This document shows positions 1 through 30,400 of a stretch of 64,000 nucleotides of DNA, one piece after another (within the stretch, counting starts at the first letter, position 1; each line of letters opens with the position of its first letter). The stretch spans positions 196,044,001 through 196,108,000 of the forward strand of contig CM097882.1 in the NCBI GenBank assembly GCA_044892505.1, given 5' to 3'. Position numbers and translations under genes: made by a program. The notes beneath the pieces were generated by a model, which was not told the DNA's origin, did no database searches, and was given only the letters and a program-made list of their open reading frames with translations. The DNA comes from Schmidtea nova (Eukaryota).

Positions 1-2445
1 TTATTTTATGAATAAAAACAAAGTAAAGAACTAATTTTTAATTAATATAAACAAAAACAAAACAAATTCATTTATTCAACAAAAAACAAAGAAAAAATTA
101 ATGGTGAAATTTCACAATACATAAGTATAAATACAAAAATAACTACAAAAATAACTAATTATTTTTATTAAAATAATATTTTAAAAATACCAATGCGTTA
201 ACAGTATCTGTGCCTAATCTATTGCGTACTTTATTAATAGAATTACTAGCAACTGAAAATACCCTCTCAGATGATGTTGATGTTGGGCTTATTGACAATA
301 GAGCTTCATATAAATTATTCATATTGCTACTTCTTTTGCCATCGTTTCCCTCAATAAATTTGAATTCTTTGTCAATATTAAAACTAGATTTATGATGTTT
401 TAATTTTGTTATAGATTCGATACTTTTTTGTAAATTGTAGTGTTCAGCTTCTATACGTTCATCATCCTCTATTTCAATTTCTGACTCTTCATCAATTTCA
501 CTTTGATTACTTCCCTCTTCTAAAAACAGCCTGTGAAACATTTGTTTTGCAAAATTCTTTGTAATAAATTTTGAAGAATAGTTTAAAAAATCATTTTCAT
601 TTTGATTTGGAAAAGTACCATGGTGTAAGAATAATAGTAATGATATTAATTCTTTATTTCTACGTTTTTCAATCTTCAATATTTCAAATAAATTCAGCGA
701 AAATTCTGTATTAATTTGCTTCAATCTTTGGAAAACGTATAACATTGTACCTTCTGCTGTCAATAAATTAGCACTGTCTTTACTCAGTTGTTCTACAGCT
801 AACATGGTTGGCTCAAGTGTAGTTGACACATTTTTTAAAACACTAACATAATCTTCATTAAAACATTGGAAACCAAGTTCATCTAATGCATTATTTATGC
901 AATTAATTAGTTTTAGGAATCTATTTATAGATTGAGCCAATGAGTTCCAACGTGTTGGTACATCTAATATCAATTTTAGTTCATGTACTTCTTGTTGTCG
1001 TACATGTTTTAATAAAATTTCTGTTCGTATTGATGAATTTCTGAAAAATTTAATCATTTTTCTCATTTCGTATAATGCTGGTTTAATATCTGAAATTAAG
1101 ACATGATTTTGTGAATCTTCTACAATTACTAAATTTTCGTCATCTTCTTGGTTCGTCTCCTTCGTCTCCACAGAAAAGCTCATCCTCATCATCTTTTTCA
1201 ACATTTGCAATATCATCTGAATTAATCTTTTTATATATAACTTTAAGTACAGCCAAATGTACAGCATGGTTATAACATAGCTGTTTCTCAGCGGTAATAA
1301 GTGAACAGTATTTTACCATCACGCTGGCACCATCATTTGTTGAAGCAACAATATCTTTCCTTAGACTTACACCAAATTCTCTCAAAATATTTTCCACCAA
1401 TTCTTTGGTTTTTTCAGCTGTACACTTTTCTGTGATTGTTACTAAGCCAAGAGCAAACTGTTGCAAATTCGATGACCGTAAATTAACATTCAAATATCTC
1501 CGTATTGAAACGTCTGTCCACTCATCAACGGAAATACTAAATTTCTTCTTCAAACTTAATAATTTCTGTAATTCGTTTTTTGTTTCAACTTTTTTTTCCT
1601 CAAAAAAATCTAATATATTCTTGCGAACTGTATTGCAGCTTCTCGGGATATTATAATGGCGGCTCGCAACATATCCTCTAATTGCATCAGAATGAACAAT
1701 GGCATTGAACGAAAATCCATCCTTGGCTGCGCATTTTGATAAAATTTCATTCAAACTTTCCTTTTTTATGAAATTCGTAATTAATGAATTAGATGACTTA
1801 TTTTGTTTAGATGTTGAAGCCTCAGAATTTAATTCATCAAAGTTGCTTGCATTAATAAAAATTCTGTGAAGTTTTAGATGGTTAATTAAACCAGTAGTAT
1901 TTTCCCCTTACAGCTTAGTCGTGCTCCGCAATCATAGCATTTAGCTTCGCCTTTATCTATTTTTTGAAAATGATTCCATGCTTCAGACTTTCGTTTGCTC
2001 ATTCTAGCAACGGGTAAATAAAACTAAAAAAATATATAACTTTCTGTAAAAAATAATTTATTTATTATTTATAGAAAAGAGCATACATAAAGTAAAATAA
2101 ATATAGTTTTAAATGAATTAAGATTTGACTAGTGAATTAAACCGATTTACATTTGACAACTGAAATCAATATAAATAAAAATCAGCTGATTTTAACTCAG
2201 TATTGCTTTTGCAATACTACCTAATATTGTCAACATTTCTTAAAATCCCTATAAGCAATAATACTCATTTTAGTTAAACTTTAAGTTTCGGAATTTTCAT
2301 ATAGTGATTTAGATATTTTTTTAAATAATTTAACCGAATTTTGAATCCCGGGTACTCAATTCGAATTACCCGGGTATTAAATTACCCGTGCAACTACCGA
2401 AAATGGCGGGTATTTGAGTACTCGGGTACTTGATTGCAAACCCTA
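1..2445 (-). mobile_element. Decayed hAT (Ac-like) DNA transposon; other end lies beyond the window start
   Basis: Minus-strand terminus TAGGGTTTGCAATC at 2445 with subterminal TACCCG/CGGGTA repeats, upstream of a transposase pseudogene. Confidence 0.8.
155..2002 (-). pseudogene. hAT transposase, frameshifted near ~1900 and ~1190
   Basis: BED finger (AWNHF..CYDC..LINHLKLH) from ATG 2002; SVDEWTD, TNDGASVM, CYNHAVHL and LDVPTRWNS motifs; C-terminal dimerisation domain SPTSTSSERVFS. Spread over three frames. Confidence 0.88.
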
Positions 2446-5478: not shown

Positions 5479-8129
5479 GAAGTAGATATACAGAGACATG
5501 GTGATCGTGGCAGACTTACGTCAGAAGAATTTGTGAATGTTTTTAAAGAAATTTCGACTCGTCCTGAGATTTTTTTTTTACTTATAAGGTATATAAATAT
5601 TTTTAAAAAATATTTTTAAAAATTACAATATGAAACATTACGTATTGTATAAAAATATTCATTTGTAATAAATGGCTAGTAAATAAACAAAATTGTTTAT
5701 GCGAAATATAGTAGGTAGATGTGTGGAGCCGGGAACAAAGACATTATGACTCATGCGTGGGCGGAAAAAAAAGAACAAAGACCCCCCCCCTCCCCCCCGG
5801 GGGGGGGGTAGAAATTTTTTTTTTGATGAGTCATCGATGAGTCATCGATGAGTCATCGATGAGTCATACTTTTTTTTTTTTTTGATGAGTCATCGATGAG
5901 TCATAATTTTTTTTTTTAAAAATTTTTTTCACGCCAAATTTTTTTTTTCAAAAATTTTTTTACGCGCCAAATTTTTTTTTTTCAAAAATTTTTTTCGCGC
6001 CAAATTTTTTTTTCAAAAATTTTTTTCGCGCCAAATTTTTTTTTTCAATAATTTTTTTTCGCGGCAAATTTTTTTTTCAAAAATTTTTTTTCGCACCAAA
6101 TTTTTTTTTTCAAAAATTTTTTTACAATTTTTTTTTTTCAAAAATTTTTTTTTTTTTTAGGCCAAAATTTTTTTATACTAATTTTTAAAGACGATTTTTT
6201 TTTTTTTTTAAGATAAATTATTTTTGGTTAAATTTTTTTTAAAAGACAAAATTCGAGTAATAAAAAATATTTACAACAGGTGTGCAAACAAAGACATTTT
6301 TATATGTGTGCATGTTTAATTAACTATTATTTGTCAAGTATGAAGCTTTTGCACTTCAAAACCATCACAGAAGAGGTTCTGCTTCCAGGGTTCTGATCGC
6401 AATGTTCTGCTTCCAGGGTTCTGATCGCAATGTTCTGCTTCCAGGGTTCTGATCGCAATGTTCTTCTTCCAGGGTTCTGATACTAAATGTTCTGCTACAT
6501 TTAATTATTATTTTTTCAAACTAAAGACATTGCAACACGTGTGCAAGTTAACAAAGACATTGCAATACACATGCAACATGAACAAAGACATTGCAACACA
6601 CGTGCAAGGACTTTGCAACACGCGTGCAACATGAACAAAGACATTGCAACACACATGCAAACTAAACAAAGACACATGTGTGCAACACATAAACAAAGAC
6701 ATTAAAAAAGACAAAATTTATTTATAAATATATCGTNNNNNNNNNNNNNNNNNNNNNNNNNNNNNNNNNNNNNNNNNNNNNNNNNNNNNNNNNNNNNNNN
6801 NNNNNNNNNNNNNNNNNNNNNNNNNNNNNNNNNNNNNNNNNNNNNNNNNNNNNNNNNNNNNNNNNNNNNNNNNNNNNNNNNNNNNNNNNTAATTACTTGT
6901 AANNNNNNNNNNNNNNNNNNNNNNNNNNNNNNNNNNNNNNNNNNNNNNNNNNNNNNNNNNNNNNNNNNNNNNNNNNNNNNNNNNNNNNNNNNNNNNNNNN
7001 NNNNNNNNNNNNNNNNNNNNNNNNNNNNNNNNNNNNNNNNNNNNNNNNNNNNNNNNNNNNNNNNNNNNNNNNNNNNNNNNNNNNNNNNNNNNNNNNNNNN
7101 NNNNNNNNNNNNNNNNNNNNNNNNNNNNNNNNNNNNNNNNNNNNNNNNNNNNNNNNNNNNNNNNNNNNNNNNNNNNNNNNNNNNNNNNNNNNNNNNNNNN
7201 NNNNNNNNNNNNNNNNNNNNNNNNNNNNNNNNNNNNNNNNNNNNNNNNNNNNNNNNNNNNNNNNNNNNNNNNNNNNNNNNNNNNNNNNNNNNNNNNNNNN
7301 NNNNNNNNNNNNNNNNNNNNNNNNNNNNNNNNNNNNNNNNNNNNNNNNNNNNNNNNNNNNNNNNNNNNNNNNNNNNNNNNNNNNNNNNNNNATAATATCA
7401 ACTTATAAAAAATAACTTATAAAAAGAACTTATAAAAAGAACTTATAAAAAAAGTAAAAATATTAACATATAAAAAAAAAATAAAAAAATAATAAAATAA
7501 TTCATTAGTTTTAATTGATTGCGCAATTTATTACAATCAAAATGTATTGGCCCTAAAGAGGACCATTATTTCGTTCACATTCTGTTTATTGGTTACTGAA
7601 TATTTTCATCATTTGTTTCTGTTTATTTTCCTCATTGGTTTTAGAATATTTTTTCATCATTTGTTTCGGATTATTTTTTCATCATTAGTTTCGGATTATT
7701 TTTTTCATCATTTTTTTTTTTTTTTTTTTTTTTCGGATTATTTTACATCATTTGTTTCGGATTATTTTTTCATTATTTGTTTCTGATTATTTTCATCAAC
7801 ATTTGTTTCTCTTTATTTTCATCAATTGTTTTGGATTATTTTCATCATTTGTTTCTGTAATCTTTTTTCTTCATCTGTAAGCTAAAATTTAGTAATATTT
7901 GTTTACAATCATAAATTGTGGCCCTGAAGAGGGCCGATTGTTCATTCACATATCTTTTTGGTTTTCTTTATATCTTTTTTTTTTTTTGAATTGTTCGGTT
8001 TAATCTTTTTTTTGATTTTTTATATTTCTTTTATATTTTTTGTCATTATCCTCATTGTCATCTTTATCCTCATCCGAAGTAGTCCCGAGCAGTCGGATCG
8101 TAGAAATCATAAGGGTCATCAGACGGACC

Positions 8130-8188
<59 letters not shown>

Positions 8189-11100
8189 CTGATCCATCAT
8201 CACCTACAAATATAGTGGTGTCACCCCCCAGATAGTGGCCATACGCCAAACTTTTATTTTTTTCCACCCAGTTCCTCTTATCGTCCCTACAAGATAAGGC
8301 TCTCTTATTGCTTTTTATACTAAAGAGCTGGTGATTTTTGCTCGTAATGCGGAACTGGGGGACATTATATATTTTATCGTTTAAAAAACAGTCAAGGTAA
8401 GACTGGTGTGTGAGACCTGCATCTTTCAAACAGATACCCTTGGCTTTCATGCAGGCCTCGTCTCCCATAAGACTATAGCACTTAGGTCTTAAGAAAACCC
8501 ACTCATCATACAGTAGACCCTTATTCTCATCCTTAAATTTGCCAATCACAGAATCAAGGGTCCTACTATACAATGCATGATGAGTGTCGTAATTAGAGGT
8601 ATCCAAAAGCCTATCGTCAATCATTGCGGTCAAAAGAGTGTTCAAGTCAAGATTTTTGATTTCCAAGAAGAAGGAATCAGTATCCCCAGCAACGATGTTA
8701 ATTTCGCAGTTGAAGTCGTTACGATATTTTTGTAACTCTTCATACTGCAGCTGGTACATACGAAGTTTGGATAAATCCAGTACGGTTTGTCCAATGTAAC
8801 TGGGTCTATCCAAACATACTGATTCCTTCTGAAGCAATACGGAGATGAGGTCATTGTCGATTTTTGTAGTTTTTTTGAAATTAGCTTTTGACGTGTAAGT
8901 CAGCAGTTTTTGTGCCGAGTTACACAGTCGTAAATTAATTCTTTTTTTTAAATTCTCTACGGTTTTGCCGTAGAGACTATTATTTAATAATTTATAAAAG
9001 TTCTTATCGAGCTTATTTGTAGATGCAGCTCGTAAGTCTGTGTTTATTTTTATATAATTATAAAAGATTTTATTTTGTGTAAATTTAATAGCGCGATGTA
9101 TGTGCGTTACCTTCACACCAATTTGAATAAATAGTTGCAGAAGCCGCCAATGAAGAACATAATTCTTCTTTGGAAGATGCGTTAGCAACAGCTTCTCAAC
9201 CTTGGATCCCGGTGCACACATCTTTTCAGCGGCAACTGGAAGATCATCCAGTTTGTCGTGAATCGATGCCGGAATTTCCAAATCCACTTCTATGGTGTAA
9301 CCATAATGAAGTGTATCGAGATTTTCCGATGTGCACTCACAAACGATGTTATTTAATAATTGGTCATCAGTGACCCACTCAAAATTACCACAAGGAAGGG
9401 GTTGGCTTAAGGCCCACCCATATAAATTATTTATGTCAATATATAGTAATGCGGTATCCGGGCTCGTCTTGACATAATGTTTATTGACAAACGTTAGTCC
9501 GCCGCGAATACCGCCCTCGAAAAAGTTATACATCTCCATATCGGTGAGGAGCTCGATAGGAGAGTCAAGAGTTAATAAAGCGGAACTCCACGACATGCCG
9601 GGAATTCCGAGAAAATTTAAAGGCTCAAGCCTGTTATGGTTAATTGATTTTAATCGAAATTGCTGAAAATAATCAGCTAACAAAAACACATCCAATTTTA
9701 GATAAACCATCATGTAATCGTACAGTGATGTACATGATGTTTCTTGCCATATTTTATGGGCAGCAGCATACTCGACAGCAGTTATATCTTTCCATTTCGG
9801 GGGTAAACACAAGGTTGATTTTAAAACTTCTAAAGAAGTGGCAGCGTCATAAGGAAAAATGCCCTTGGCAGTGACTATAGTGCCTCGAAATTCAGATTGT
9901 GTTAATGGTAAGCTAGTGAGTGTTTTTACTGCATTATTTAGAGACTCACTTACAAACTGATAAGAGTCAATAAATTTTACGGTCAGGCTATCGATGTACG
10001 CGAAAAGACTTAAAAACTTTTCACTAGTCAATGGAATACAACTAATATTCCAACTGTTATATTTGGAAAGACCATATTTTAAAATATGGTGTAAATCGTA
10101 ACCCTTCAAGTTGTGAAAGATTACGGGCAAAGAGTGTCGTATTTGCCGGGACTTGTTACATTCTGAGCAGGCTGCTCCAATATAAAGACCGGTGAAATGG
10201 TCGTGATCCCTAACAGGCGCAACTAAAAGTTTTTTGCATAAATAACAATTAGTGCTATTATCAAATTGTCGCTGTTGGGTCGCAGTGATAGTCATACGTT
10301 TTTGATAATTTTTATAATAATAGGGTGTCACTATATACCGACTGATTGACTCAATTTCTCTTAAGAATTGATCAACACCGTCTAACCCTACAAAAGATTT
10401 GTAAATTCTCACCCCAGAAAAGTTGTTAATGAGAAGGAGACCTGCGGCAATAGGAAGATGTTTTTGGTGGTGAACAGTGTCTTTCGGTAATATTGCCTCG
10501 AAATCTGCATATATTACGAAAGGAGGAGTTACTGTTTTCTTCCAATCAGTAAACTCCAAAAATTTATTTTTGGGTAAGGTGTACAGTGTAGTACCCAACT
10601 GATTTTTGTTACAAAGACCCTTATGACGATTAAAGGCTTCGTCATTCCTAAACCCATTCAAGCAACGAGGGCACCATTGACTACAAATCCTAACTGGGGT
10701 GATTGTGCTGTTTCGGCAATTCAAAAAGCGATTCAGATCGGTAATCGCAAGATAATGAAAATTATCTTTTTTCTCCAAAAGAAGCAAATTTATGGGAATA
10801 GCCCCGACTACTTTACTACGGTAGACTATATCGATAAAGGGATGTTTAAGAACGACATTATCATCATTGTCATTGTCGCTTACATCTATTTGGGCCTTTT
10901 CGTCATATGTAAGGACATTAATACTATAGCCACTGTTTTGTCTCTCAAATTTTTTGATGTTAACTAATTTCATGGGCATGTCGGTGGGGTCAAAAACAAG
11001 TTGGGAAAGATCATAAGAAGTAGTCCTATGCCTGTATTGGCGTTCAATACTATTATATTTAACTACTGCCAAGAAACTGTAAAGAAAGCAATAGGTGTCA

Positions 11101-11686
11101 TTATTTTGGACATTTACAAGGCAACTTAAATTTCTTAAAGTATTCGGCGTCTGGATATAACTGCTGCCGCTCAATCGACTAATTTCCGAAAATTTAGTGA
11201 CTAAAAAACTAATATATTCTATTTTAGAGATTGTCCAATTACTCCCCTTTTCGTTAATCTGGACAATCTTCTCATTTAAATTAGTGACACCTTCCTCAAT
11301 AAAGGTATCACTCCACTCTCTGGCAGAATTTGAGATGACGAAAGATTGTAATTGATCATCTTTCTCAAATTCTACCTTGAGACAAAATTGTATTTTAACT
11401 GATTTTAAATTAATAATATATGATTTTAATTTATCTACTAATATATCAGGTACAGAGACCGTTTTTAATAATAAGTTAGATACATCCATTTTTATAATAA
11501 AATGGGTATCGTTCAAGTCGGAAGTAACTTCAACAATACCCATTCCAATTTGATTATTATTATTATTTAAAATATTAACATAATCGTCAAATTCATCATC
11601 ATTGACGATTATGTCAGATATAATATTCATATTACTACTTTTATTATAAATAAGATCATCCTCATCATCACTGATGAGGGATATAA

Positions 11687-11753
<67 letters not shown>

Positions 11754-12097
11754 ATTAGAAATATTATTTTCATCTTCATCATCGCTGATGTCGATGATGA
11801 TCAGTTTTTTAGGAACTGAATCCGTTAATGTTGTATTTTTACGTTTATTATTTAGTTTTTGTAAAGTATTATTATTTTGTAGAATATTATTTTGTAGATT
11901 ATTATGATTAAGTGTATTATTTAGATTAAGTGTATTATTATTATTATTATTATTATTATTTGTATTTTGTAAATTATTTGTATTTTGTAAATTATTTGTA
12001 TTTTGGAAATTATTATTTATATTTGTATTATTTTGTAAAATATTTCTATTATTTGTATTTGGATTTTGTAAATTATTATTATTATTATTATTAATGG

Positions 12098-12148
<51 letters not shown>

Positions 12149-15100
12149 GGTTGTTATTAGTAATATAATTTTTATATAAAGAATTAAAAAGAGATTTTTT
12201 TGAAGGTTGGAATTGGGAAAGATGAGTCCTATGAGAAAGGTAAAATTCCTTATAAGATTTAACTTCAATAATTTTACATTTTGGGCAGAGGAGGTGGGTG
12301 ACACCATTATATTTATAGGTATAGTACTTTTCCATAATGACATGACAGTCATTATGGAAACGACTATTACAAAAATTGGTATATGTTAAACCTGAATATA
12401 TGGAAAAAATTAAAATATAATTTAAATAATAATTATAATAATTATAAAAAATAATATCATCATCAATATTCTTTTTATTATTATTAATATAAAATAATTC
12501 CTAATTAATATAAAAGTTTTCATCATTATTTCGTCATATTAGCCTTCTTTTTGGACATTAAACAAAAAAAAATATTATCATCTAAATCTGTCTTGTTTAT
12601 CTTGGTAATTTACCTTTTAACTTATTAAGTAATTGTTTTAAATATGTTACTTAATAAGTTAAAAGGTAAATTAATATAAAAATTAATATAAAAATAATAT
12701 AAAATTCAATATAAAATTCAATATAAAAATAATATAAAATTCAATATAAAATTCAATATCAAAATTCAATATCAAAATATTTTTCATTATAACGTTAATT
12801 ATTCATAAAAAATAAAATCTTCATCATTTCATATTATTATTGTTCATCATTATTTCTTCATCATTCTTTGTCATAATAATAATAATTCAGCTTCTTCATT
12901 TCGTCATAACAAATTCTGCATTTCATATAATTATTTCTTCATAATATTCTTGGTCATAATAATTCATCTTATTCATTTCATAATAACAAATTCAACATAA
13001 TATCCTTTTAACTTATTAAGTAATTGTTTTAAATATTTTACTTAATAAGTTAAAAGGTAAATTACTATAAAAATAATATAAAAATAATATAAAATTCAAT
13101 ATAAAAAAAAAAAAAAAATCAATATAAAATATTTTTTCATTATAACGTTAATTATTCATAAAAAATAAAATCTTCATTATTTCATATTATTGTTCATCAT
13201 TATTTCTTCATATTATTCTTTGTCATAATATTAATTCTTCTTCTTCTTTATTTCATCGTAACAAATTCTGCATTTCATATAATTATTTCTTATGTCACTT
13301 CATTTCATAATAACATCATAACAAATTAAACATAATAATTTCATTATTTTTAAAAGTTATTATTATTATATTAAAAGATTTAATTAAAAAATATTATTAT
13401 TATTATTATTATTATATAAATAAATAAGAATAAATTACATTTAGAGTTTTTAAAACTCTGTCCATTCAGTTTCATGGCATCATCGTTACTCGGGACATCA
13501 TTCATAATAATCGGTTCATTTAAAATCGTCTCATCGGCATCCATATCTACAGCATTCATATTTTCTAAAAAATAATTTAACAATAATGAAAATTAAAATA
13601 TTATTAATTTTACTGATAATTCTTTTCGTATTTCCAAGTCCACTTGAGGTTCCGGCCATATTGATCGATAAATTAACACCTAAAAAAAAAAAAGATTAAT
13701 ATAATTAAATAAAAAAATAATAATTTTACTGTTAAGGCCTCCCGCGATCCGCTTCGATTTATTAATATTTGATAAATTATTCATATTTAGAAAATTTCTT
13801 GAAAATTTTTGATAGATTTAAAATTTGAAAGTAAAAAGTGACGAAATAATTCAAGTATATACTATATAAAGGTGAATTTTATTAACCGACCAATCAGAAT
13901 CGAGATAGGATAGGCAAATACATGCACACATACTGCACACATAATATATCTTTGTTTATGTGTGTTTGACGTCACGATATTGCTTTGTATCGTGACAAAG
14001 ACATGACATGTGCTTATCACGCATTGATCACGCACTGGTCATGCCTTTGTGATGAAAATAATAATATTTATAATTAATAATAATAAAAATAATAATTAAT
14101 AAAAATAATAATTAATAAAAATAATAAAATAATAAAATACATTTATTGCTTTAAATAATCAACAACAGCAGACAAGCACCCTTTATAGGCACACATGCAA
14201 TGATCTTTATAGGGACATGAAATGTTTTCAGGAACATATTCAACATCTTTATAATTATATTTAATTAATCTTAATTTGGGGAAATACTTCTTCAAAACAT
14301 ACATCTTTTCATTATCGGTAACATAGAAAATAGCTCCTTTATCTGTAATATCATCCATTATACATTTTGGGCAAAAATAATCTTGTCCTTCAAACGATTC
14401 TATACGATCAGGCCATAAAGATAAATCACTGTATATATAATACTGAGGTGTGAAAATATTATTGACATTCATAATACATAATTCCTTAATTGTTGTTCCA
14501 CCCATTTCATTATATCCATAAAAATCGATAAAATAACAAGACATTTTTTCAAATAAAGTTTATTAAAATAAATTGTTTATAACATTGATTTCAACCATGC
14601 AAGGCAATGTTCACCACAAGTGATTGTTAAAGGATGCTGATACCGAATTCTATTATACACAATAGGTTTACCGATAGTTTGTAGTTTTCGAACAAGTAAA
14701 TTCGGATAATAATATCCAAAGGGATCAAATACATGTATTCGATCTGGTTTCACATAAACTGCAATCCAATGTTCACCGCCCAACGTAGATGTCTGAGTAT
14801 TTACAATGATGGCTTGATTCATTTTCAAATAAGGTATTTTATCGAGAGGAAATACTCCAATAAATTGATTTCCCAATAGTTTTTTACCTTGTTGTAATAC
14901 CTGAAAAGAACTATTTCAAAATAAATAACTAATCAATTAAAAATCTTACTCCATAATAATAATAATAAAAATAATAACTTTGATCATTTATACTGTTTAA
15001 GCTTTGCTCAAAATACAAATGTTTAAGCTCAAACCAATAATGTTTGAGCTCTGCTCAAACCAGTATTGTTCGATTGGCAGTAATTTGAACTTCATTTTCA

Positions 15101-18100
15101 AAAACTCCATAAATAACTACATGAACCGGTTCATCAATAGGTTTGGCAAACTTTATATCGAGTCGTAAATTTCCGTTTTGAGGGATTTGGCTTTGATTCA
15201 AATCAAAATCGGGAGCCAGAACAAATGTAAAGAATGGATAACTAGATTTAAATTCATCTAGACCAATACCACAATTCAAGTTTTTATCCAAATAACCTAG
15301 ATTTCGGACAAGACTTTGCATATATGATGCACTAAAATTATCATTTTCAAAATCCTGGGTATATGTTTCACGATAATCGGTATTTTTCGACAATGTTAAT
15401 GAAGTCACATTAAAATGTTTGAATGTTGATGTTGACTCGGTATAAGACCCATTATATTGATTTTCAGATTGAAAAGCCACAAGAATGAAATTAGGCATTC
15501 GTCTATCTCCAAATATTTGCTCCTTGTAAAATGACGATGCCCCTTTACCGATAGCAAACGATACGATTTCTTTAGATTTTAATGGATAAATTGCATGTTT
15601 TTTATTTAAACCAATTTGATGACCGGCCAATACTGAAGAATCACATCGAACTCTTCTTACCATTAATTTTGCATCAACTATTTGGATAACTGGTTTCCCA
15701 GCTGCAGATTTCAATGATAATGCAGAATCAGATCGCTTCAATCTAATATGTACATTAACTCCGGGAAGTAAGTATTTAGGTTGATCCATAAAATCCAGTT
15801 GTAATGACGAACACATGTTGAAAAGTTTAGATCCCTTTATCCATTTTTTCCGATCGTCGGCTGAACCATATCCCATTGGAGTAAGACACGTTTCTTTAGC
15901 ATCATTCGTATAATTTAAAATAGTTTCGATTATTGCCTTGTGTGCATATGTATTGTTTCCACCCTCGATTTTTATATTATTAAATCCGAGAATTACATCT
16001 TTGAAAAGTGTATGAAACAAATAATTATTGGGAACTACATCACTCACATCAGCTAGAGCTTTTTTATCTTTATCTACAACCTTGATTGTAACGGACAATA
16101 ATGTATCGTTCAAATCCAAATATTCGGTTTGAGAACCATTAATGTAAAATTCAACATCATTTCTACTATCTGTAATTGAATTCATTGGAAACACATCTTC
16201 AAACGCCCCATATTCAATAACTGCTTGAGGTGATGGTCGATCAAAAAGACATAATTCAGATTTACCGCAAATCATTCTTCAAATATAGTTCCATGACCTT
16301 TCATTCGTTTGTTTATACGTTTTCGTTTACGTCTTGGTCCTACCGGTACAGATTCCGGTTCCTTATTTTTTGTAAACATACTTGTAATTGTAGGAAGCAT
16401 TTGTGTTACAGCAGGTATAGCTTTATTAACTGCGGCCAAAGCATTGGTTTTCAATGACGGTAATATTTTATTATCTTTCATGAGAACGTCCTTGGCAGTA
16501 TTCATTCCGAAATTACCTAGTCGTCTAAGAATTGGAAGTGCAAATCTCCCAATAGTTTTCAACCAACCTGATCCGTACTGTTTACCGACAAAATACGGTA
16601 ATTCGCCACCAGTTTGGCTATCACTGTACATTGAAACTATATCGGGATTACTCATCGTTTTTTCGAAAATGTAGAGTTAAGTGAGTTTTTGAATCTTTTG
16701 GAAATTTTATAAATCTTCCACTGTCATCCCGGATATTTATTTCTATATTGTTTATACAAGATGTTGAAACAGGTAAATACATTGGATTTTCAACTTGTAT
16801 TTGAACAATTTCATCTGGCTCGTATTTTTCAATCCATACCGATTTTAGTAAAGGAACCAAGGAATCACCAACAATAATGGGTTCGATAATGTTTGTATAC
16901 ACGAATAATTGCTGATGAAGTTTAGATATTTTCGGTTGACGAACACCAGAAATGATATTTTTATCGGTAAATGTATCCTTATCTAATCCCAATGTATTGA
17001 CCAAGTATTTATCAAATCTGACTTTATTGATTTTTTCTTTGAGTTTGAATTTGAACAATTTATTTAATTCGACAACTGTAAAAATATCCGAACAATTATC
17101 GCTAATATATTTCTGTAATTCATCTAGATGCGTTATATACAACTCCTCCTTGAAGGTGAATACATGTCCTTCTTGACGATCATACGATATAGTAAAAGTA
17201 ATTATTTCTTCATCGTTACTGGCCAAGTTTTGCATAACTTTGAATTCACATTCTTCTTCATTACATTTTATTGTCAGTTTATTACTTCCCATTCGTTTTG
17301 CTACATCAAGATCGTTAAATGTAATTGTATAAGGAACAACATTACACGTGAGAATTATTTTTCCACTTCGTTGCCACATTTCGATATCCGGATCAATTGT
17401 GTGAGTTGGAACATTCAGATGACCACTATTATTATATATCGAGAAAAATGCATTTGCAACAATTGTTTTCGTAATATAGTAATATATTTTACAATAACTA
17501 TAAAATGGAAAAGGTTGGTAAACAAATGTAAAATCCATTAGAGCAACTTCCCAATTTCCGTTTAAATAAATTGGATTAGGTAAATTCACCATGAATTTAC
17601 TTGCGGTATTATCCGGATGGATATTCGGACAACTATTGCTCGGTAAAATAGTGTAAAAATTCACTTTACTAGATTTTTTGACGAGATCCATGATGGTTCT
17701 TTATATCCATGCCATTTAACATAGTATTGTTTATCCTTACCCACCATTTTAGTCTTCAAAATCTTTTGAATTCTAAATATCGTAGGTTTAGGAATAACTT
17801 GTAATTCTTGTTCGTAGAATTTGCCGCTGATTATATTGTTATCAGAGTCACGAATAGTATACATGACAGGATTCTGCACTGTGTTGACTTTCGATATTTG
17901 ATATACCTCATCACTCCAATTATTATCAAAATTTTTAACGAATGGCGATGTACTAATCTTGCTAATTCGAACATGATCATCAACTTTATATTTTGGTTTC
18001 TTTACTTTCACTTCACTCACAATATTTTCAGTATCAACTACTTCTGCCGGTTTCCTGCCATTTATACCCCGATGAGCACTATGATTATAACTATGAATCA

Positions 18101-21100
18101 ATTGAGGTAAGACATTAATCCAGGTTTTATTGCCTTTAAAAACAAAGTATTTTTTCAATCGATCACGCAAAGTTCGATTAAATCTCTCGACATGAGCGGC
18201 TTTGAATTGTGAGAATACCGAATAATGATTTATTCCCTTGATTACTTCCTTGACTTTACTGTTGTAAAATTCCTTTCCTAAAAAATATTAAATTTATAAA
18301 TTTAAATTAAAATTTACCCAAATCCGTTTGTAAATTAGTTGGCCGATCCTTTTTCATCATTGTCTTGATAGCAATTGCCATATCATTAGCAGATTTTGAT
18401 TTTACTCCAATTGCTCGAGCAAATCTACTGTAAACATCAATACACGTTAAAATATACTTGTACCCCTTGTTAATTTTGGAATACGGAATCATTTCCATCA
18501 AGTCCATTTGCCACAAATCATTGATTCTATATGTTTTATATGCTCGAGTTGGAAATCGTTTCAACATCGGCTTGTTTAGACTGTATGCAAGTTGCCCCGA
18601 TAACCAACTTTGTGTCTGTTGTTTCGACTTCTGTGCTTTTTTCCTTAGCTTTTCGACTCCACCGAAACCGGCGTCGTCTTTTGGGTTCGTCCAGATCTTC
18701 TCCATTGCAACAAGAAGATTTAAAGTTTAAATTTAAATTAGGTAATGATTGACCCATTGTTTATGACTTTCTTTTTCCCAATAAACCAGCACCTCCCAAT
18801 AAAGATAATGCTAATGGTAACAATGCTGCAATAAAACCACCTTGTTGTTTATATATTACTTTGCGCATAAGTTTTTTATTTTTTGAGTTTACTAGCGACA
18901 ACAATGGTTTTTTATGTTTGTTCAAAACACGGCGATTAGATGGAGTTAGATTTATTTTACCTCGCACGACTTTAATTAAAATAGAGAGTAAATCATCGAT
19001 GACGTAACTAGGAAACGATTGAAGAATACCCATTCTTCTAACGGAAGGGGCTTTAAGTAATGCATTAAAAAACGGTAAACTACGATGATGTGTTTGTTTA
19101 GCATTAGATTTCAAATTATTTTTGGGAATATTATCCATAAGTATTTTCTTGGATTTCTTTCTTGATTTCTTTATAGATTTCTTTGTAAATAGTTTCTTTG
19201 TTTTCTTTCCCGCTTTCTTTGTTCTAGCCTTTATCAATGGCTCAAACTTTACTCGAGATTTCATTAACATGATTACGATTGTAAACAGAATTAACTTTGT
19301 TTATAAACCATGGCTCCTTCAGGGTTAAAAATATCAGTTCTAACGCGTAAATCATCACTGCATTGTTGAGTAAAATCCAGGAAAATATATCCATGAGGAG
19401 ATTTTGTAGCATCTTGAAAGGCTTCAATCAAAAAGTTACGATTAGAAGGATAAGCTTGTCTTGCCAGAAAATCAATAACTGTTGCATCTCTAGGATTTTT
19501 AAAAACAACAAGATATTGAACATTTAAATTACGAGTTCGATGACTACCGCCCTGATGAAATAAATTCTGAGTTATAAAAATAACAGTAACACCTTTATGT
19601 CTACTGATTTTCGTAAATAAGTTATTGAAATCCTTTTCTTTATTTGCTTCTTGATACAAGTCGTCAATGATAATCACATCACCATGTTTTAATCTAGATG
19701 ACCAGTTTTTATCGAAACCTTTAATGATTGTCATTTTTATTTTACAAAACTGATCTTGTGTCATTCCACTTTCGTCGTCAGCTCCCCTATGCCAATAAAT
19801 ATTATTAAATTTTGACTTGAATAATTTCGATTGCAATAATTTACAAACAAATAAAGTTTTTCCACTCCCGCTCGGACCAACAATTTGAAACACTGCATCA
19901 TTTCTTAATTCCATATTTAAAACTTATATTTTGTTAATATTATTGTTTATATTTGTTTTAAATACCTGTTCTCAAAGTAATTATTTCATTTAAAAATATT
20001 TTCAGTAATGATTAGAAACATTAATTACAAAGGTAAGACAGATGTATCACACATGAAATTTCCAAATGGAAAACCCCAGCAAATTGTAGATCGAAGTGGG
20101 AAATACCCAATAATATACTTTAAATCAGGAAGATATAGAATAATGGGATGCAGAGAATTTATTAGTGACGAACAAGTTGAGTTTTACGATTTAAAGATAC
20201 AATCGATAACTGTAACTGCGGATTTAGGATTTATTTGTAATTTGAATGAATTATCGAAATTAATACCGTGTGTTTACGAGCCAGAATTATTTCCAGCTTT
20301 GAGATATATCAAATATAATCCCATGTGTGTAAATATATTTACAAGCGGGAAATTAGTCATATTAGGATTAAAAAACAAAGACTATAGTACTATAGTTGAT
20401 GATATTATTTACGATATAAAATCAATTATAGAAGATAAAGCCTTTGTTGATTTCATACTAACATGTGACTCATGACTGCAATATCGATGCATTAGAAATG
20501 CACGATTCTGATTGGCTCTGTGTGTATCGATAGAATAAAGACATGTTGTGCATGCTTCATTCTGATTGGTTCATTATGTGTGTTTCAAATCATGTGTGTT
20601 TCTTTGATATATATACTATGAACAATCTCACATAGTTTATATTCACAATTATGTCGATGACCCAAACTTTAATTAAAAGCCGTAAGGATTTTAATTTTTA
20701 ATTTTTCATATTTTATATTATTATTATTTTAGATAAATTAATGAACGTAATATATCGCAAATTGGAGGAGCTGTTCCCGAACCTGATGCCTGCTCTGGTC
20801 TACACGGCTCCTGAGATGTTCCCGTACAAGATTATGGTCTTGACGGGAATCGACATCAATCAGATTGTGCTCGATCATATGACGAGCCAGAATACGGATC
20901 TCCCAATGGTACCCGAGCACATTATGTGCGCTTATCAATGCGGGAGCTGCGTGGAAAGAATCCGGCAGTTTAATATCTGGGTTTTGAGGAATTCCCTCAA
21001 ACTCTATGATGTTCAACAAATGGACAAAATCGAGGAGGAGGAGCAGGAGGACCAAATCAAGGAAACATGGCCCAACTCAACTCCGGAGCCGACTGATGAA

Positions 21101-21245
21101 ACAACAACAACAACAACAGAATTGGAAGCACCAACTCTAGATGGTCCGTTTCCATCCGATGAATCCAATGATTGTATGGAATCGCCACAATCACCGGATT
21201 GTGCAGAATGCCATCGACAAGCTGATGGTGGTGATAATGAAGAAG

Positions 21246-21278
<33 letters not shown>

Positions 21279-24200
21279 AAGAAAACGCAGAACAATGATT
21301 TGATGTGTGTTTAATGTATTTAGTTTTTTTTTCATTTAGTTTTTAGTTTTGTAATTTTAGTTTTGTCATTTTAGCTTAATACAAGTTTATTATTCATTTT
21401 AGTTTTCATTTATTTAAATATTAATAGTTTATCTTTTATTAAATCATTTTTTTTTTTTATTTTTTTTTTTTAATAGTAGTAGTAGTAGTAGTAGTATTTT
21501 ATTAACTGTATATAAAAAAAGTAAATAGTTTTTATTAAATAATAATTAGTAAGAAATTGTTTTATGTAAGATAATTATAATTATAATAATAATAATAATT
21601 ACGAAATAAACAAATAAGTAAATACATTAGTAGCAGAACATTGCGAACAGAACCCTGGACGTAGAACTTATTCTGTGATTGTTTTTATATGAAAAAGCTT
21701 CATAATAAATAATTAAAACATGCATGCATACAACAAAGACATTGCAATACATGTGCATACTGTGTGCAAAACAAATGCATGAATACGATTGGACAAAGAC
21801 ATCCAGTCATCAGTATAAATACAAAGACATTTTATAAAATATTGTCACTATTTACAACATGCAATCACGAAAACAAAATTTGGATATAAGCGAAGAAAAA
21901 ATATATCAGACTGAGGTAAAACCAGTTCAGATGTACTATGACAGCCGACTTTATTTTTTGGTTAATGAAATACCGTATCGATTATCATATCCGGTAAAGT
22001 TAACAAAATCTTTATATGATAGTCTTGCTGTAATTATTGCCAAGGAAGATATTATCGCATTAAATCGAATATTTTCAAAGATGAATGTTAATTTGACATG
22101 TAAAGAAACAATGTACATCAATAACAGAAAAACTCGGTTTCATGATGCTTTTCAAACTATTGATTTCATGGATCAAGAACACTGGTTCGTTACAGTTATT
22201 ATTCAAGGGTACAAGATTGATAAAAAAGATGTTGTTACTCCGATTTGGAGAGTTGACAATGCAAGATACGCATAATTGTTTTTTAATAAATATTTTAGTA
22301 TGAACAAATTTAGTTTTTATATTAGTTTTTGTTTTTAAAATGAAATTAATTATAGTTATTTTATTATTATTATGTGTTGACAATACTGAAGGAGAACAAG
22401 CTTTGGAGGATTGTCAATCATCCCATCCGTTTCGAAAACAAGATAGTACTTGCGCGAGTTATAACGATATATGTCTTTACTCAAACATTGAATGCAATCA
22501 AATAAAATTACAATGTAATCAATGTCCTTCCAAAAATAATGTGATTAATAAAGATATTGAAAAAATGATTGACAAAATAATGATGAAAATAGTTGAACGA
22601 TTAAAATGTATAAATCAAACTATTGTTAAAAAAGAATATGAAGTCAGATATCAAAATCAAACAGTTGAAAACGAAAAAACATCAATTGTTTTACATTATA
22701 TAAGTTTATTTATATTAATAATTATACTGATGTTATCGGCATCCATACGGCTGGAGAAGATTTCAAATATTCCAAAGAATAATATTCCGACAAATACTAG
22801 TATTCCGATGAATAATATTACAATGAATAATATTCCGATGAATAATATTCCGAGTAACAATTCAGATGTAAATAATTTTGAAACTAAATTTTGTACACGT
22901 ACACAACGATATATTTATAAATAAATTTTGTCTTTTTTAATGTCTTTGTTTATGTGTTGCACGCATGTGTCTTTGTTTAGTTTGCATGTGTGTTGCAATG
23001 TCTTTGTTCATGTTGCACGCGTGTTGCAAAGTCCTTGCACGTGTGTTGCAATGTCTTTGTTCATGTTGCATGTGTATTGCAATGTCTTTGTTAACTTGCA
23101 CACGTGTTGCAATGTCTTTAGTTTGAAAAAATAATAATTAAATGTAGCAGAACATTTAGTATCAGAACCCTGGAAGAAGAACATTGCGATCAGAACCCTG
23201 GAAGCAGAACATTGCGATCAGAACCCTGGAAGCAGAACATTGCGATCAGAACCCTGGAAGAAGAACATTGCGATCAGAACCCTGGAAGCAGAACATTGCG
23301 ATCAGAACCCTGGAAGCAGAACATTGCGATCAGAACCCTGGAAGCAGAACCTCTTCTGTGATGGTTTTGAAGTGCAAAAGCTTCATACTTGACAAATAAT
23401 AGTTAATTAAACATGCACACATATAAAAATGTCTTTGTTTGCACACCTGTTGTAAATATTTTTTATTACTCGAATTTTGTCTTTTAAAAAAAATTTAACC
23501 AAAAATAATTTATCTTAAAAAAAAAAAAAAATCGTCTTTAAAAATTAGTATAAAAAAATTTTGGCCTAAAAAAAAAAAAAATTTTTGAAAAAAAAAAATT
23601 GTAAAAAAATTTTTGAAAAAAAAAATTTGGTGCGAAAAAAAATTTTTGAAAAAAAAATTTGCCGCGAAAAAAAATTATTGAAAAAAAAAATTTGGCGCGA
23701 AAAAAATTTTTGAAAAAAAAATTTGGCGCGAAAAAAATTTTTGAAAAAAAAAAATTTGGCGCGAAAAAAAATTTTTGAAAAAAAAAATTTGGCGTGAAAA
23801 AAATTTTTAAAAAAAAAAATTATGACTCATCGATGACTCATCGATGACTCATCAAAAAAAAAAAAAAGTATGACTCATCGATGACTCATCGATGACTCAT
23901 CGATGACTCATCGATGACTCATCAAAAAAAAAAATTTTTCTACCCCCTCCCCCCGGGGGGAGGGGGGGGTCTTTGTTCTTTTTTTTCCGCCCACGCATGA
24001 GTCATAATGTCTTTGTTCCCGGCTCCACACATCTACCTACTAAATATAATAAATCAATAAATTTCATATTAATAATTGTATGATTATAGATCACGAACAT
24101 TTTTTGGTTGTTAGGTACACGATATTTTAGCATAGCCTTTATACACAGTTGATACATTAAAATTAAAAAAATTGATCTATAGTCATACAATGCTTATTGT

Positions 24201-27400: not shown

Positions 27401-30400
27401 TCTGTTTATTGCTTTGCTTGTAAACTATTTAGTAAAAAATCTAATGTTCTAGTTTCAGGATATTCAGATTAGAAAAATATTGTAGACGTTTTGAAAAGAC
27501 ATGATGAGTCGAAAGAACATAAAAGTTGTATGTGTGCTTATGTTCGTCGTGCTAAAATAAGTGGTCGCATCGATTCCAAACTTTTACAGGTAATAGAAAA
27601 AGAGTCAATTTATTGGCGAGAGGTATTAAAACGAGTCGTTGCTACAGTTAAACTTTTGGGAAGTTTGGGTTTAGGGTTCAGAGGACATGATAATTCTTCC
27701 AAAGGCAATTTTTTCAGCTGTATTGAATATTTGGCTGAATTTGATGACTTCTTAAAGGTTCACTTAGAAAAATACAGTAATTGCGGAAGTGGGCATGTTA
27801 ATTATTTATCTAAAAGCACGTGTGATGAATTTATAGAACTTATGGGCAAAACCGTACAAAAATCCATTGTTGATGAAATAAACCAAGCTAACTATTTTGC
27901 TCTTATAGTTGATTCCACGCCTGATGCAAGCCATACTGACCAGTTAACTATTATTATCAGGTACGTAGATCTGGATCAAAAAATTCAAGAAAGGTTCATA
28001 TGTTTTATTTCGATTGAACATCATGATGCAACATATTTAGAAAAAACGATTTTGTCCGCCTTGTCAGAATTAGGGTTGAACATTAATAATTGCCGGGGAC
28101 AAACGTATGATAATGCTGCGAACATGTCAGGCATTTATAACGGTCTCCTAGCCAAAATTAAATGTTATAACAAAAATGCTGAATTTGTACCTTGCGCAGG
28201 ACATTCTTTAAATGTAGTTGGAAATACAGCAGCAGATTGTTCTTCTAAAGCTATTAGATTCTTTGATTTTATTCAAAATTTATTTGTTTTTTTTCCTCTT
28301 CGACAAAGAGATGGGATCAGCTAAGGAATACTGATCAAAAATTAAGCCATAGTTTAAAACGTATATGCGACACTCGATGGTCATCTAGAGCTGAAGCTGT
28401 ATTAACTGTAAGAATGAATTTTTCTTCCATAAAAACTGTTCTTGGTGAAATTTGTATTAACCCATCTGAAAAACCCATAGCAAAAATTGAGGCGAAAAAA
28501 TTACATAGCAGTTTTGAAGATTTAGAGACGGCTCTGTTATTGATTTTTTGGAATACGCTATTGCAAAGAATCAATGCGTCCTTAACAATAAGTCCTTACA
28601 AAGCAAAGAATGTAACTTACAAAAAGGAACATATTTATTGAAATCTTTATCAGAATTCATACTTATTATTCGAACTAATGATGCATATTTTCACCAAATG
28701 GAAAAAGAAGCAATCGAATTATCTGGTAGTACAGAATACTCAACAGCAAAAAATCGAAACAGGAAAAGAAAAATACTATTCGATGAAACTTCTGATAATG
28801 ACACAATTTTATGTGGGAAAGAACTATTCAAAGTTGAAACATTTTACTCAATTTGTGATACTTTAAACTCTGAAATAAAAAGAAGGTCTGTAGTTTATGA
28901 CAAGGTATTAGAAAGTTTCTAATATTTGTTGATTTAGATTTGCCTGAAGAAAAATTTGCTCAGTGTGTATCAAATTTAGCTGAACACTATAAAGATGACA
29001 TAAATCAATTAGTATTCAAAGATGAGGTTGAACAGTTCCTTTATTTTGTAAAATTGGAAAAATTATTAACACTTCCTGAAATGTATGCATCAATTCTGGA
29101 AGGTTTATCATCAACATTTCCAAACGTTGAAATAATCCTAAAAATTTTTTTAACAATCCCAATTGCAAATGCGTCTGGTGAGAGATAATTTAGCATTCTT
29201 AAGCGGGTCAAAAACTATCTAAGGACGTCACTTGGCCAAAAAAAACTAAATCACTTAGCTATCATGGCAATTGAAAGCGATCTAGACAAAAAAATTAACT
29301 ATGACTCCTTAATTGATAATTTTGCAAATAATAAATCACGAAAAAAAATATTATAAATGGGCTTTCTTTGGTCAAAATTTAGAAACTAAGCCATGAAAAA
29401 AAAATATTTATTATTTAAAAAAAAAATCTTAGAGGGGCCACAATAATTGATTTTTGCCTTGGGCCTCAATTTGTTAATATCCGCCTCTGGTAACACGGGA
29501 TATCGGGGTATATCAAATATGACTCCCAGTTTTCCTACTTAAAAATCATAAACCTGTGAAAAACTTTAATTAATATTTTTCATTGAAAATAAAGTTGGAA
29601 GTGGTAAAACAAAATTCAAATATAAAATTATGGATTTGTCTACTTTGTTAAAATTATATTCTAATCAAAAGTATATATTTCTAATAACGTATAATGAAAC
29701 CGAAGAAGCTGTCTTAGAATTGCATTGCAAAAAGTCATATAAAAAAAAAAAGTCATATATAAAAAAAAAGTCATATATATCTATAATATTTATGAAAATT
29801 TCTCTATTTCATTTTTTAGGCAACTACAACATAGTTTTTTTTTCATTCTTTACATAATTACGATAAAACAATCAAAATAATTGCGTTTTTGTAATAATAG
29901 TAAATTAAAATTTTGGTTTCGGAGTAATTATATATTTTAGATATTCAAACAACGGTGAATTTCTGAGTATTGAAGATCTATTACTATTTCTTGAAGCAGA
30001 ACAAGGAGTTAGTTTTGAGTAATTTTGAATAAATTACATTTATTATATTTTTTAATAATTATGTTTGTTATTTAATATTATTTATTGTTTTTATAATTAG
30101 TTGTTAGATCTGCTCACTTCGAACACTTTTCTATTTGTTCCATTCATATTTTAGTTAATGGAATAAATGCTACTATGTTTGCAAGTTACAGATTATCTGT
30201 AGGACCTTGCATATTCAAGTGATGTGGTATTCAGTGTACCAGGTATGGTATTTAACAAAGATCTTTCGACTTTGTTTTATACTTACTTGTCGCAGAGAGA
30301 AATTTTTGCGTCTCCTGCATAGCACTAACGAGAGCCAAAAGCTCGAAACTAGTCTGCTATTGGGGATTTGCACTGGGTATCACAAAGTTTTACTTGTTAA

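Follow-up and report, generated by a model that had tools for sequence, protein, structure and literature searches.

A shortened homologue of the TATA-binding protein encoded by a Polinton in the genome of Schmidtea nova

Accounts of Polintons, or Mavericks, usually centre on the genes for replication, integration and the capsid, and how the genes of these elements are transcribed is, to our knowledge, essentially unknown. The question is raised anew by a stretch of 64,000 nucleotides from the genome of Schmidtea nova (assembly GCA_044892505.1, contig CM097882.1, positions 196,044,001 to 196,108,000 of the forward strand; hereafter the window, in which all coordinates below are counted), where an 18,332-bp Polinton carries, next to its packaging ATPase gene, a small gene whose product resembles the TATA-binding protein (TBP). 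Is this product a genuine member of the TBP family, how much of the TBP architecture does it keep, and what might it do for the element that encodes it?

The gene corresponds to an intact open reading frame (ORF) of the plus strand, 20008-20475, encoding 155 amino acid residues, the end coordinate including the stop codon. The frame is open from 19981, the first ATG after the upstream stop is the one at 20008, and database relatives share the start residue of the window protein. The initial annotation of this DNA had placed the ORF divergently from the ATPase gene across a gap of 93 bp, and both the coordinates and the match of the ATPase ORF to Pox_A32 (E 6.7e-7, 29.5 bits against a cut-off of 22.8) agree with this description. 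The locus is composed as follows.

20008..20475, plus strand: TBP-like gene (ORF; Pfam PF00352; matches to solved TBPs; AlphaFold2 model; Foldseek).
20008..20175, plus strand: reduced repeat 1, residues 1-56 (DSSP of the model; hhalign).
20176..20466, plus strand: complete repeat 2, residues 57-153, with the order S1-H1-S2-S3-S4-S5-H2 of strands and helices (Pfam; structure alignments; DSSP).
20275-20295, plus strand: repeat-2 stirrup word, Y90-P96 (translation).
19291..19914, minus strand: packaging ATPase of the A32/FtsK type, 207 aa (Pox_A32).
19915..20007, no strand: divergent intergenic gap between the ATPase and TBP-like genes, 93 bp, with one copy of the word ATAAACAA at 19943-19950 on the minus strand.

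A splice-acceptor-like word (a T run, then CAG) is located at 20001-20007, 2 nt short of the TBP-like ATG, and may be due to chance in DNA so rich in A and T. A search of the window for another TBP-like gene, which also covered the fragments of a related element at 47-53 kb, found none.

Sequence and fold comparisons agree that the window protein is a TBP homologue of variant architecture, not a canonical TBP. The Pfam family TBP (PF00352) was matched over residues 62-133 with 51.1 bits against a cut-off of 22.9 (E 1.2e-13), a single repeat being recognised, and a score so far above the cut-off puts the likeness of the words YEPELFP and IFxSGK to TBP, from which the gene had originally been recognised, far beyond chance. 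Both words are indeed present in the translation (Y90-E91-P92-E93-L94-F95-P96 and I110-F111-T112-S113-G114-K115) and occupy the same columns as in solved TBPs. A phmmer search against all solved structures returned 35 distinct TBP chains and nothing else, all at E<=6.5e-9, the best being the TBPs of Methanococcus jannaschii (E 1.6e-17) and Sulfolobus (E 1.1e-14); residues 57-139 match both repeats of each solved TBP, the C-terminal repeat better. With the family profile as query, solved TBPs were matched at E 3.8e-21, and alignment of 28 relatives with 20 canonical two-repeat TBPs by hhalign gave a probability of 99.6 (E 1.9e-24) over a span running from residue 27 onward, that is, from repeat-1 strands S3-S5 through all of repeat 2. 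PHROGs, applied to the TBP-like protein and to nine other ORFs of the element, returned nothing useful. The AlphaFold2 model, built on a 28-sequence alignment, has a mean predicted local distance difference test score (pLDDT) of 90.6 and a predicted template modelling score (pTM) of 0.80. The fold predicted by it is a TBP-like saddle: in Foldseek comparison with the PDB, the top 44 matches are all TBP, with about 170 aligned columns and template modelling (TM) scores of 0.59-0.69, and the next match has an E value of 1e-2. The structural check proposed with the initial annotation thus came out in favour of the TBP fold, as did the Pfam match.

The two halves of the protein have fared very differently. 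According to DSSP of the model, repeat 2 consists of strands at residues 63-72, 88-91, 97-100, 107-111 and 115-121 and helices at residues 79-83 and 127-153, while repeat 1 consists of strands at residues 2-10, 25-28, 35-38 and 42-48, residues 1-60 being free of helix. The protein consequently does not have the two full tandem repeats of a ten-stranded saddle with four helices, its repeat 1 amounting to four strands and no helix. In hhalign, residues 27-49 fall on repeat-1 strands S3-S5 and are followed by a deletion of 13-15 residues at the position of helix 2, and in the global alignment I2 and N4 fall on strand S1. A reduced first repeat in a TBP homologue, as had been claimed, is therefore seen both as a helix-2 deletion in the alignment and as a helix-free segment in the model. 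The assignment of repeat 1 rests on hhalign and the fold, because Pfam and a BLASTP comparison of the two halves of the protein gave little, the latter only a 12-residue match (E 0.022).

Of the four positions at which phenylalanines wedge into DNA in solved TBPs, three have aligned counterparts in the window protein. In the alignments with solved TBPs, F95 and F111 align with the wedging pair of repeat 2, and F38 aligns in hhalign with the second Phe of repeat 1 in canonical TBPs. For the first Phe of repeat 1 the alignments show no confident counterpart; a candidate is F18, situated in a loop that stands in for helix 1 and strand 2. The earlier reading of repeat 1, as keeping the second Phe but lacking the first-stirrup Phe and much of both helices, was largely right, with F38 standing for the second Phe, F18 possibly taking the place of the first, and the model having no helix at all in residues 1-60. 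The acidic C-terminal stirrup of TBP is the part that contacts TFIIB, or TFB. In the window protein, the corresponding stirrup, Y90-P96, aligns column for column with those of 2z8u, 1mp9 and 1ais. Differences from canonical TBPs were found at the centre of the saddle, where Ser66 takes the position of the strand-1 Asn of repeat 2 in three aligned archaeal TBPs, and Met46 and Leu119 stand where solved or canonical TBPs have Thr or Ala.

These features are shared by a large family of short proteins. A word-indexed protein search yielded 33 relatives of 104-225 aa with 34-74% identity, and an exhaustive search of representatives clustered at 50% identity yielded 1142 matches at E<=1e-3. When 180 sequences from both searches were classed by their coverage of the family profile, at least 83 spanned the whole short-family profile without interruption (median 159 aa) and 53 were canonical two-repeat TBPs (median 195 aa). 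The 83 short members are 29-60% identical to the window protein, and many of them represent separate 50%-identity clusters. In at least 85% of them, the residue of the window protein is retained in 26 columns. The wedging Phe positions are nearly invariant (F38 in 82/83, F95 and F111 in 83/83 each), and the position of F18 is Phe in 68/83 and aromatic in 72/83. In the repeat-2 stirrup and just past it, E91 is kept in 79, P92 in 75, E93 in 81, L94 in 65, P96 in 75 and A97 in 76 of the 83; other conserved positions are N4 (80/83), M46 (83/83), G47 (82/83), R99 (73/83) and N109 (83/83). Position 66 is Ser in 77/83 and Thr in 6/83, and the strand-5 position of repeat 2 that aligns with a Thr of 2z8u is Leu in 54/83 and Thr in 14/83. 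This pattern of conserved columns argues for purifying selection on the concave face and the repeat-2 stirrup, together with a changed saddle centre. A second AlphaFold2 model was built, on an alignment of 82 sequences, for the member furthest from the window protein (29% identity). It has a pLDDT of 89.5 and matches only TBPs, with TM scores of 0.70-0.81; its repeat 1 keeps helix 1 and five strands, with only a short helix in place of helix 2.

All 33 relatives from the word-indexed search were drawn from assemblies in ENA, Logan, JGI and MGnify, for the most part from short contigs, and none of them has a source in NCBI or UniRef. An informative name, the automatic 'TATA-box binding protein' of JGI, is attached to only five of them. 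The exact sequence of the window protein is absent from the protein collection searched. Many 'partial' members start at profile position 49, apparently the invariant Met46. It looks as though gene callers pick this internal Met as the start, the family being under-called in metagenome annotations.

The element that encodes the gene has the defining features of a Polinton/Maverick, namely terminal inverted repeats (TIRs) of about 1 kb, a target-site duplication (TSD), AG...CT termini, a family-B DNA polymerase (PolB), an integrase and the packaging ATPase, and the statement that a bona fide Polinton carries the gene is upheld by them. Besides the ATPase listed above, these are:

5710..24041, no strand: Polinton, 18,332 bp (termini AG...CT, TIRs, TSD).
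5710..6736, plus strand: left TIR, 96-100% identical to the right arm, its inner end abutting masked sequence.
22906..24041, minus strand: right TIR (inverted-repeat comparison).
8070..12335, minus strand: protein-primed family-B DNA polymerase, 1421 aa, with an endonuclease-VII-like insert (relatives with PF03175 and PF02945).
17661..18705, minus strand: integrase with rve core and chromodomain, in two ORFs of different frames (Pfam matches rve and Chromo).

The TSD is a perfect 6-bp repeat, AAATAT, at 5704-5709 and 24042-24047. Masked runs of N at 6737-6889 and 6903-7391, just inside the left TIR, are counted in the 18,332 bp. The near-identity of the TIRs and the intact TSD indicate that the insertion is young. 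The polymerase was assigned through relatives of 41-58% identity that carry PF03175 and PF02945; the ORF itself gave no match to PF03175 at E<=10 in hmmscan, matched Endonuclease_7 in mid-protein (residues 681-729) with 21.8 bits, under the cut-off of 23.6, and had no match among solved structures. The only named relative of the polymerase is a moth protein of 30% identity. In the integrase, rve was matched at E 2.3e-8 (34.7 bits against a cut-off of 32.6) and Chromo at E 1.2e-4 (22.3 bits, below the cut-off of 25.1); that its coding capacity is spread over two frames points to one or more interruptions, by a frameshift or by an intron that was not recognised. No RNA polymerase gene was detectable in the Pfam and PHROGs scans of the element ORFs.

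A related contig of 11 kb, consisting of Polinton/adintovirus-like DNA that may come from an animal host, carries a TBP homologue 52% identical to the window protein. One of its strands has an rve integrase gene, three small genes and a gene for a 207-aa A32-type ATPase, and the divergent strand has a Bcl-2 homologue, then the TBP homologue, then small ORFs. The TBP gene is therefore placed beside the divergent ATPase gene as in the window, with one extra gene, that of the Bcl-2 homologue. A RING-type zinc-finger gene lies further on in this contig; the window element has neither the Bcl-2 nor the RING gene.

If the protein serves transcription, the promoters of the element should be considered next. 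The initial annotation had spoken of the element's TATA promoters and had named three TATA words, all of which exist, at 20608-20615, at 21814 and, on the minus strand, at 14992-14986. The upstream regions of 11 element ORFs, 2,750 nt in total, were scanned; the textbook TATA word proved not to be enriched there, and the minus-strand genes are marked instead by another word, ATAAACAA. When the upstream regions were compared for common words, ATAAACAA turned up in 6/11, a number that random sets of windows reach in 0.3-0.5% of trials. Within the minus-strand block 12336-20007 (7,672 nt) it occurs ten times in the sense orientation and never in the opposite one, against about one expected (Poisson 1.8e-7). 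The promoter-like features of the element are:

12593, 13952, 14573, 16309, 16748, 17727, 18757, 18845, 19297 and 19943 (plus-strand starts), minus strand: copies of ATAAACAA.
20505..20615, plus strand: promoter-like stretch 3' of the TBP-like stop codon, ahead of the ORF at 20741-21298.

The first base of ATAAACAA lies 34, 36, 36, 41 and 43 nt upstream of the ATG of the 169-aa ORF, the ATPase and the 133-, 406- and 347-aa ORFs, respectively; further copies stand 59 nt ahead of the integrase ORF and 100 nt ahead of a 127-aa ORF. In 6/10 copies the word is preceded by T, which makes it TATA-like. The plus-strand genes have no proximal ATAAACAA, the one copy at 21606 being 253 nt upstream of the ATG at 21859. 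Each TIR arm contains the word once, in symmetric positions (6689 on the plus strand and 22946 on the minus strand). In the promoter-like stretch of the plus strand, ATTCTGATTGG is present twice (20505-20515 and 20559-20569), 54 bp apart, as reverse CCAAT boxes, and is followed by the TATA word TATATATA at 20608-20615, at -133 from the ATG at 20741. Judged by its words, this layout is that of a host-type polymerase-II promoter, and the two putative promoter classes coincide with the two strands of the element.

On balance, we lean towards the view that this shortened TBP-family protein serves the Polinton as a transcription-initiation factor of its own. The concave face would still bind and bend AT-rich promoter DNA, as is established for TBP, and the repeat-2 stirrup would dock host TFIIB, so that RNA polymerase II is brought to the promoters of the element; lacking half of the convex surface and a normal repeat-1 stirrup, the protein might be free from the host partners and repressors that dock on these parts of cellular TBP. 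Since the base-contacting residues at the saddle centre are altered, the preferred DNA word is probably different from the textbook TATA box. The best candidate target is ATAAACAA, which stands at a fixed short distance before the ATPase, the integrase and the neighbouring, presumably morphogenetic genes of the minus strand. The plus-strand genes, including the TBP-like one, would have host-type promoters, be expressed first and then switch on the minus-strand block. Taken to its full extent, the shortened TBP would be the specificity factor of a self-contained two-stage Polinton programme, in which a host-type promoter is used first and ATAAACAA, with host TFIIB and RNA polymerase II, thereafter, escaping the regulators of host TBP; in this complete form we consider the proposal rather doubtful.

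Several observations weigh against these proposals. Upstream of the 11 ORFs, the textbook TATA word was matched four times, compared with a background of about 5 per kb (both strands, element-wide), and is thus not enriched. The link between the protein and ATAAACAA is put forward as a hypothesis from their co-occurrence in a single element, and ATGs only 34-43 nt past ATAAACAA would mean very short leaders if this word acts as a TATA box. ATAAACAA also contains TAAACA. On the side of the protein, the N-terminal 61 residues alone gave no Pfam match at E<=10, the repeat-1 stirrup is remodelled in the predicted structure, and the substitutions at Ser66, Met46 and Leu119 could mean altered or weakened DNA binding. 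The most distant member keeps helix 1 in its model, and therefore the loss of both repeat-1 helices is, as far as the models go, a trait of the window's subfamily, only the shortness being common to the whole family. The synteny with the ATPase gene, finally, is known from one related contig only.

Alternatively, ATAAACAA may have nothing to do with the TBP-like protein and be a host forkhead site or another signal of the element, the protein acting instead at other AT-rich sites, for example the TATA words found at 20608 and 21814. TAAACA, inside the word, is the core recognised by forkhead factors (PMC2910063); moreover, a base other than T precedes four of the ten copies, and the leaders would be just about 5-15 nt long if the word were a TATA box. 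The 34-43 nt spacing to five ATGs and the strand bias of ten to none are, however, typical of a core-promoter element and not of an enhancer-type site, and we regard such an unrelated role of the word as quite possible, though somewhat short of probable.

A role in initiation would be mistaken if the protein were a decoy or competitor, which sequesters TFIIB or occupies host TATA boxes and damps host transcription without forming a complete initiation complex. A repeat 1 that lacks both helices and one strand, next to conserved stirrup residues in repeat 2, would suit such a role, as would the position of the gene beside a Bcl-2 homologue in the related contig, that is, among accessory genes that manipulate the host. 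Retention of F38, F95 and F111, in both halves of the concave face, and of N4 nevertheless points to selection for productive DNA binding, beyond contact with TFIIB alone, and an activator would be of obvious benefit to a compact element whose promoter words lie close to its genes; a decoy seems distinctly unlikely. Still less can be said for a DNA-bending architectural protein that serves replication, integration or packaging, for instance at the repeat-rich termini. The gene does adjoin that of the packaging ATPase, and the TIRs contain internal repeats and one ATAAACAA per arm (6689 and 22946), but the stirrup residues E91, P92 and E93, which a purely architectural role would not need, are among the best conserved. 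We know of no TBP-family member with an architectural role in replication, integration or packaging, and consider this explanation very improbable. That the gene is a passenger, or a captured host gene in decay without function for the element, is close to refuted: Polintons do pick up host genes and the accessory genes of the relatives vary (Bcl-2 being present in the related contig and not in the window), but the ORF is intact and full-length, there are 83 full-length relatives, of as little as 29% identity, with 26 columns retained in 85% of them or more, the protein resembles animal TBPs no more closely than those of archaea or plants, and the gene has the same position in a 52%-identical relative.

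How does a Polinton-borne TBP homologue of this kind compare with known members and mimics of the family? With cellular TBPs (PF00352; PDB 2z8u, 1mp9, 1ais, 1ytb and 1c9b) the window protein shares the order of elements in repeat 2, the stirrup word and the Phe-x-Ser-Gly-Lys turn, at about 21-29% identity over the structural alignment. It differs from them in its length, 155 aa as compared with a core of about 180 aa, in the absence of an N-terminal extension, and in its helix-free repeat 1 of four strands instead of five. With respect to origin, archaeal, microsporidian, plant, yeast and human chains rank by PDB E value without a clear break, and the nearest canonical TBPs in the databases are a mixture of plant, Nitrosopumilus and unnamed sequences. 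These comparisons reveal no affinity with the TBPs of animals. TRF2, or TBP-like 1, is likewise a TBP paralogue that serves a subset of promoters. Both of its repeats are complete, its DNA-wedging Phe residues have disappeared, and it is not known to bind TATA. The window family, in contrast, keeps Phe at positions 38, 95 and 111 in 82-83 of 83 members and has a truncated repeat 1, and no match named TRF2 or TBPL1 was found in the solved-structure sequence, profile or Foldseek searches.

Viral TBP-like proteins are more distant than cellular TBPs. Those of giant viruses (Nucleocytoviricota) have the same fold, and 17 BFVD models match the window model at E<=1e-3, among them TATA-box-binding proteins of Heterosigma akashiwo virus, Aureococcus anophagefferens virus, Terrestrivirus and Marseillevirus and the homologue of asfarvirus B263R. 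At 8-20% identity and a best E value of 1.6e-6, they match it less well than cellular TBPs do, and they are mostly 190-500 aa long; giant viruses, moreover, carry their own RNA polymerase, of which none is detectable in the window element. In beta- and gammaherpesviruses, the TBP mimics BcRF1, UL87 and ORF24 act in a late-gene pre-initiation complex that uses a non-canonical TATA-type word and host RNA polymerase II (PMC4893493, PMC7498053, PMC12529657). The mode of action proposed here would be alike, although there is no sequence relationship and the matches of these mimics to the window model in Foldseek are marginal (U58, E 4e-3, TM 0.39; BcRF1, E 7e-2, TM 0.37). The herpesvirus proteins exceed the window protein in size several-fold and make direct contact with polymerase II, whereas the window protein keeps a TFIIB-type stirrup; the mimics may be seen as the closest functional analogy, not as relatives.

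A TBP homologue in a Polinton-related virus-like element has a precedent. The legend of Fig. 5 in Starrett et al. 2021 (PMC8502044) lists a 'TBP' gene in midsize eukaryotic linear dsDNA (MELD) viruses, which have an adintovirus-like PolB and derive from non-animal datasets, and TBP also occurs in a second figure legend, in the preprint 10.1101/697771. In the parts of these sources that were available, the gene of MELD viruses figures as a label in a legend, with no account of its sequence, structure, conservation or architecture, and these legends were the only mention in the literature found for TBP in Polinton-related elements. The initial annotation had presented the gene as new to animal Polintons, a claim that is weakened by this label and by the large family that already exists without annotation. 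Earlier descriptions appear to be lacking for the short architecture, for how large and how conserved the family is, for its fixed location next to the ATPase gene and for the strand-specific promoter word.

The 133-, 406- and 347-aa ORFs of the minus strand have no Pfam or PHROGs match, and genes for double and single jelly-roll capsid proteins and for an adenain-type protease were not identified with these libraries. The 169-aa ORF at 18761-19270 (minus strand), also without family match, encodes a basic protein with a very Lys-rich N-terminal part and a hydrophobic C-terminus rich in Gly, Leu and Ala, which could be a core or membrane-active virion protein. The region 12336-14143, between the polymerase and the next ORFs, is poor in ORFs and very AT-rich (GC about 0.19). 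A splice-acceptor-like word near 14900 and the minus-strand TATA word at 14992-14986 suggest spliced or decayed genes. On the other strand and in the rest of the window, the following were found.

20741..22924, plus strand: three co-oriented ORFs 3' of the TBP-like gene, of 185, 138 and 194 aa, without Pfam or PHROGs match.
47028-48490, minus strand: PolB-like pieces of a second, related element.
49515-49817, minus strand, and 52768-53052, plus strand: pieces of the second element resembling the 138-aa ORF.
50233-50433, minus strand: piece of the second element resembling the 185-aa ORF.
155-1754 (minus strand), 27491-28324 (plus strand) and 42211-46484 (plus strand): flanking mobile elements.

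The 185-aa ORF (20741-21298, plus strand), which has no family match, encodes two Cys-x-x-Cys pairs, a Thr run and a long acidic poly-Glu tail, and loosely recalls the 'Oncoid' description in Starrett et al. 2021. The product of the 194-aa ORF (22340-22924, plus strand), the 3' end of which enters the right TIR, has a hydrophobic N-terminus, many Cys and a hydrophobic stretch near the C-terminus, and looks like a membrane or secreted protein. Diverged copies of the 138-aa and 185-aa ORFs are present elsewhere in the window, and the second element, diverged and in fragments, extends over about 47028-53052 with a run of N at 51266-51440 inside. The flanking mobile elements comprise hAT transposase pieces, a DUF4371 transposase-like ORF and a Ty3-type retroelement with zinc knuckle, protease and reverse transcriptase-RNase H; the named relatives of the Ty3-type reverse transcriptase are from spiders and insects (37-47% identity).

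If the favoured reading is true, at least one large lineage of Polintons brings its own promoter-recognition factor, and a TBP together with ATAAACAA at a fixed distance from start codons would offer a concrete model of Polinton gene regulation; the finding would weigh more if the link between the protein and this word holds. For the biology of TBP, the family is a natural experiment on how far the saddle can be pared down: in the present case both helices and one strand of repeat 1 are gone, with the DNA-wedging and TFIIB-facing residues still under selection. Should the two-stage reading also be true, the protein would be a minimal counterpart of the late-gene TBP mimics of herpesviruses, in a lineage thought to be ancestral to many double-stranded DNA viruses of eukaryotes.

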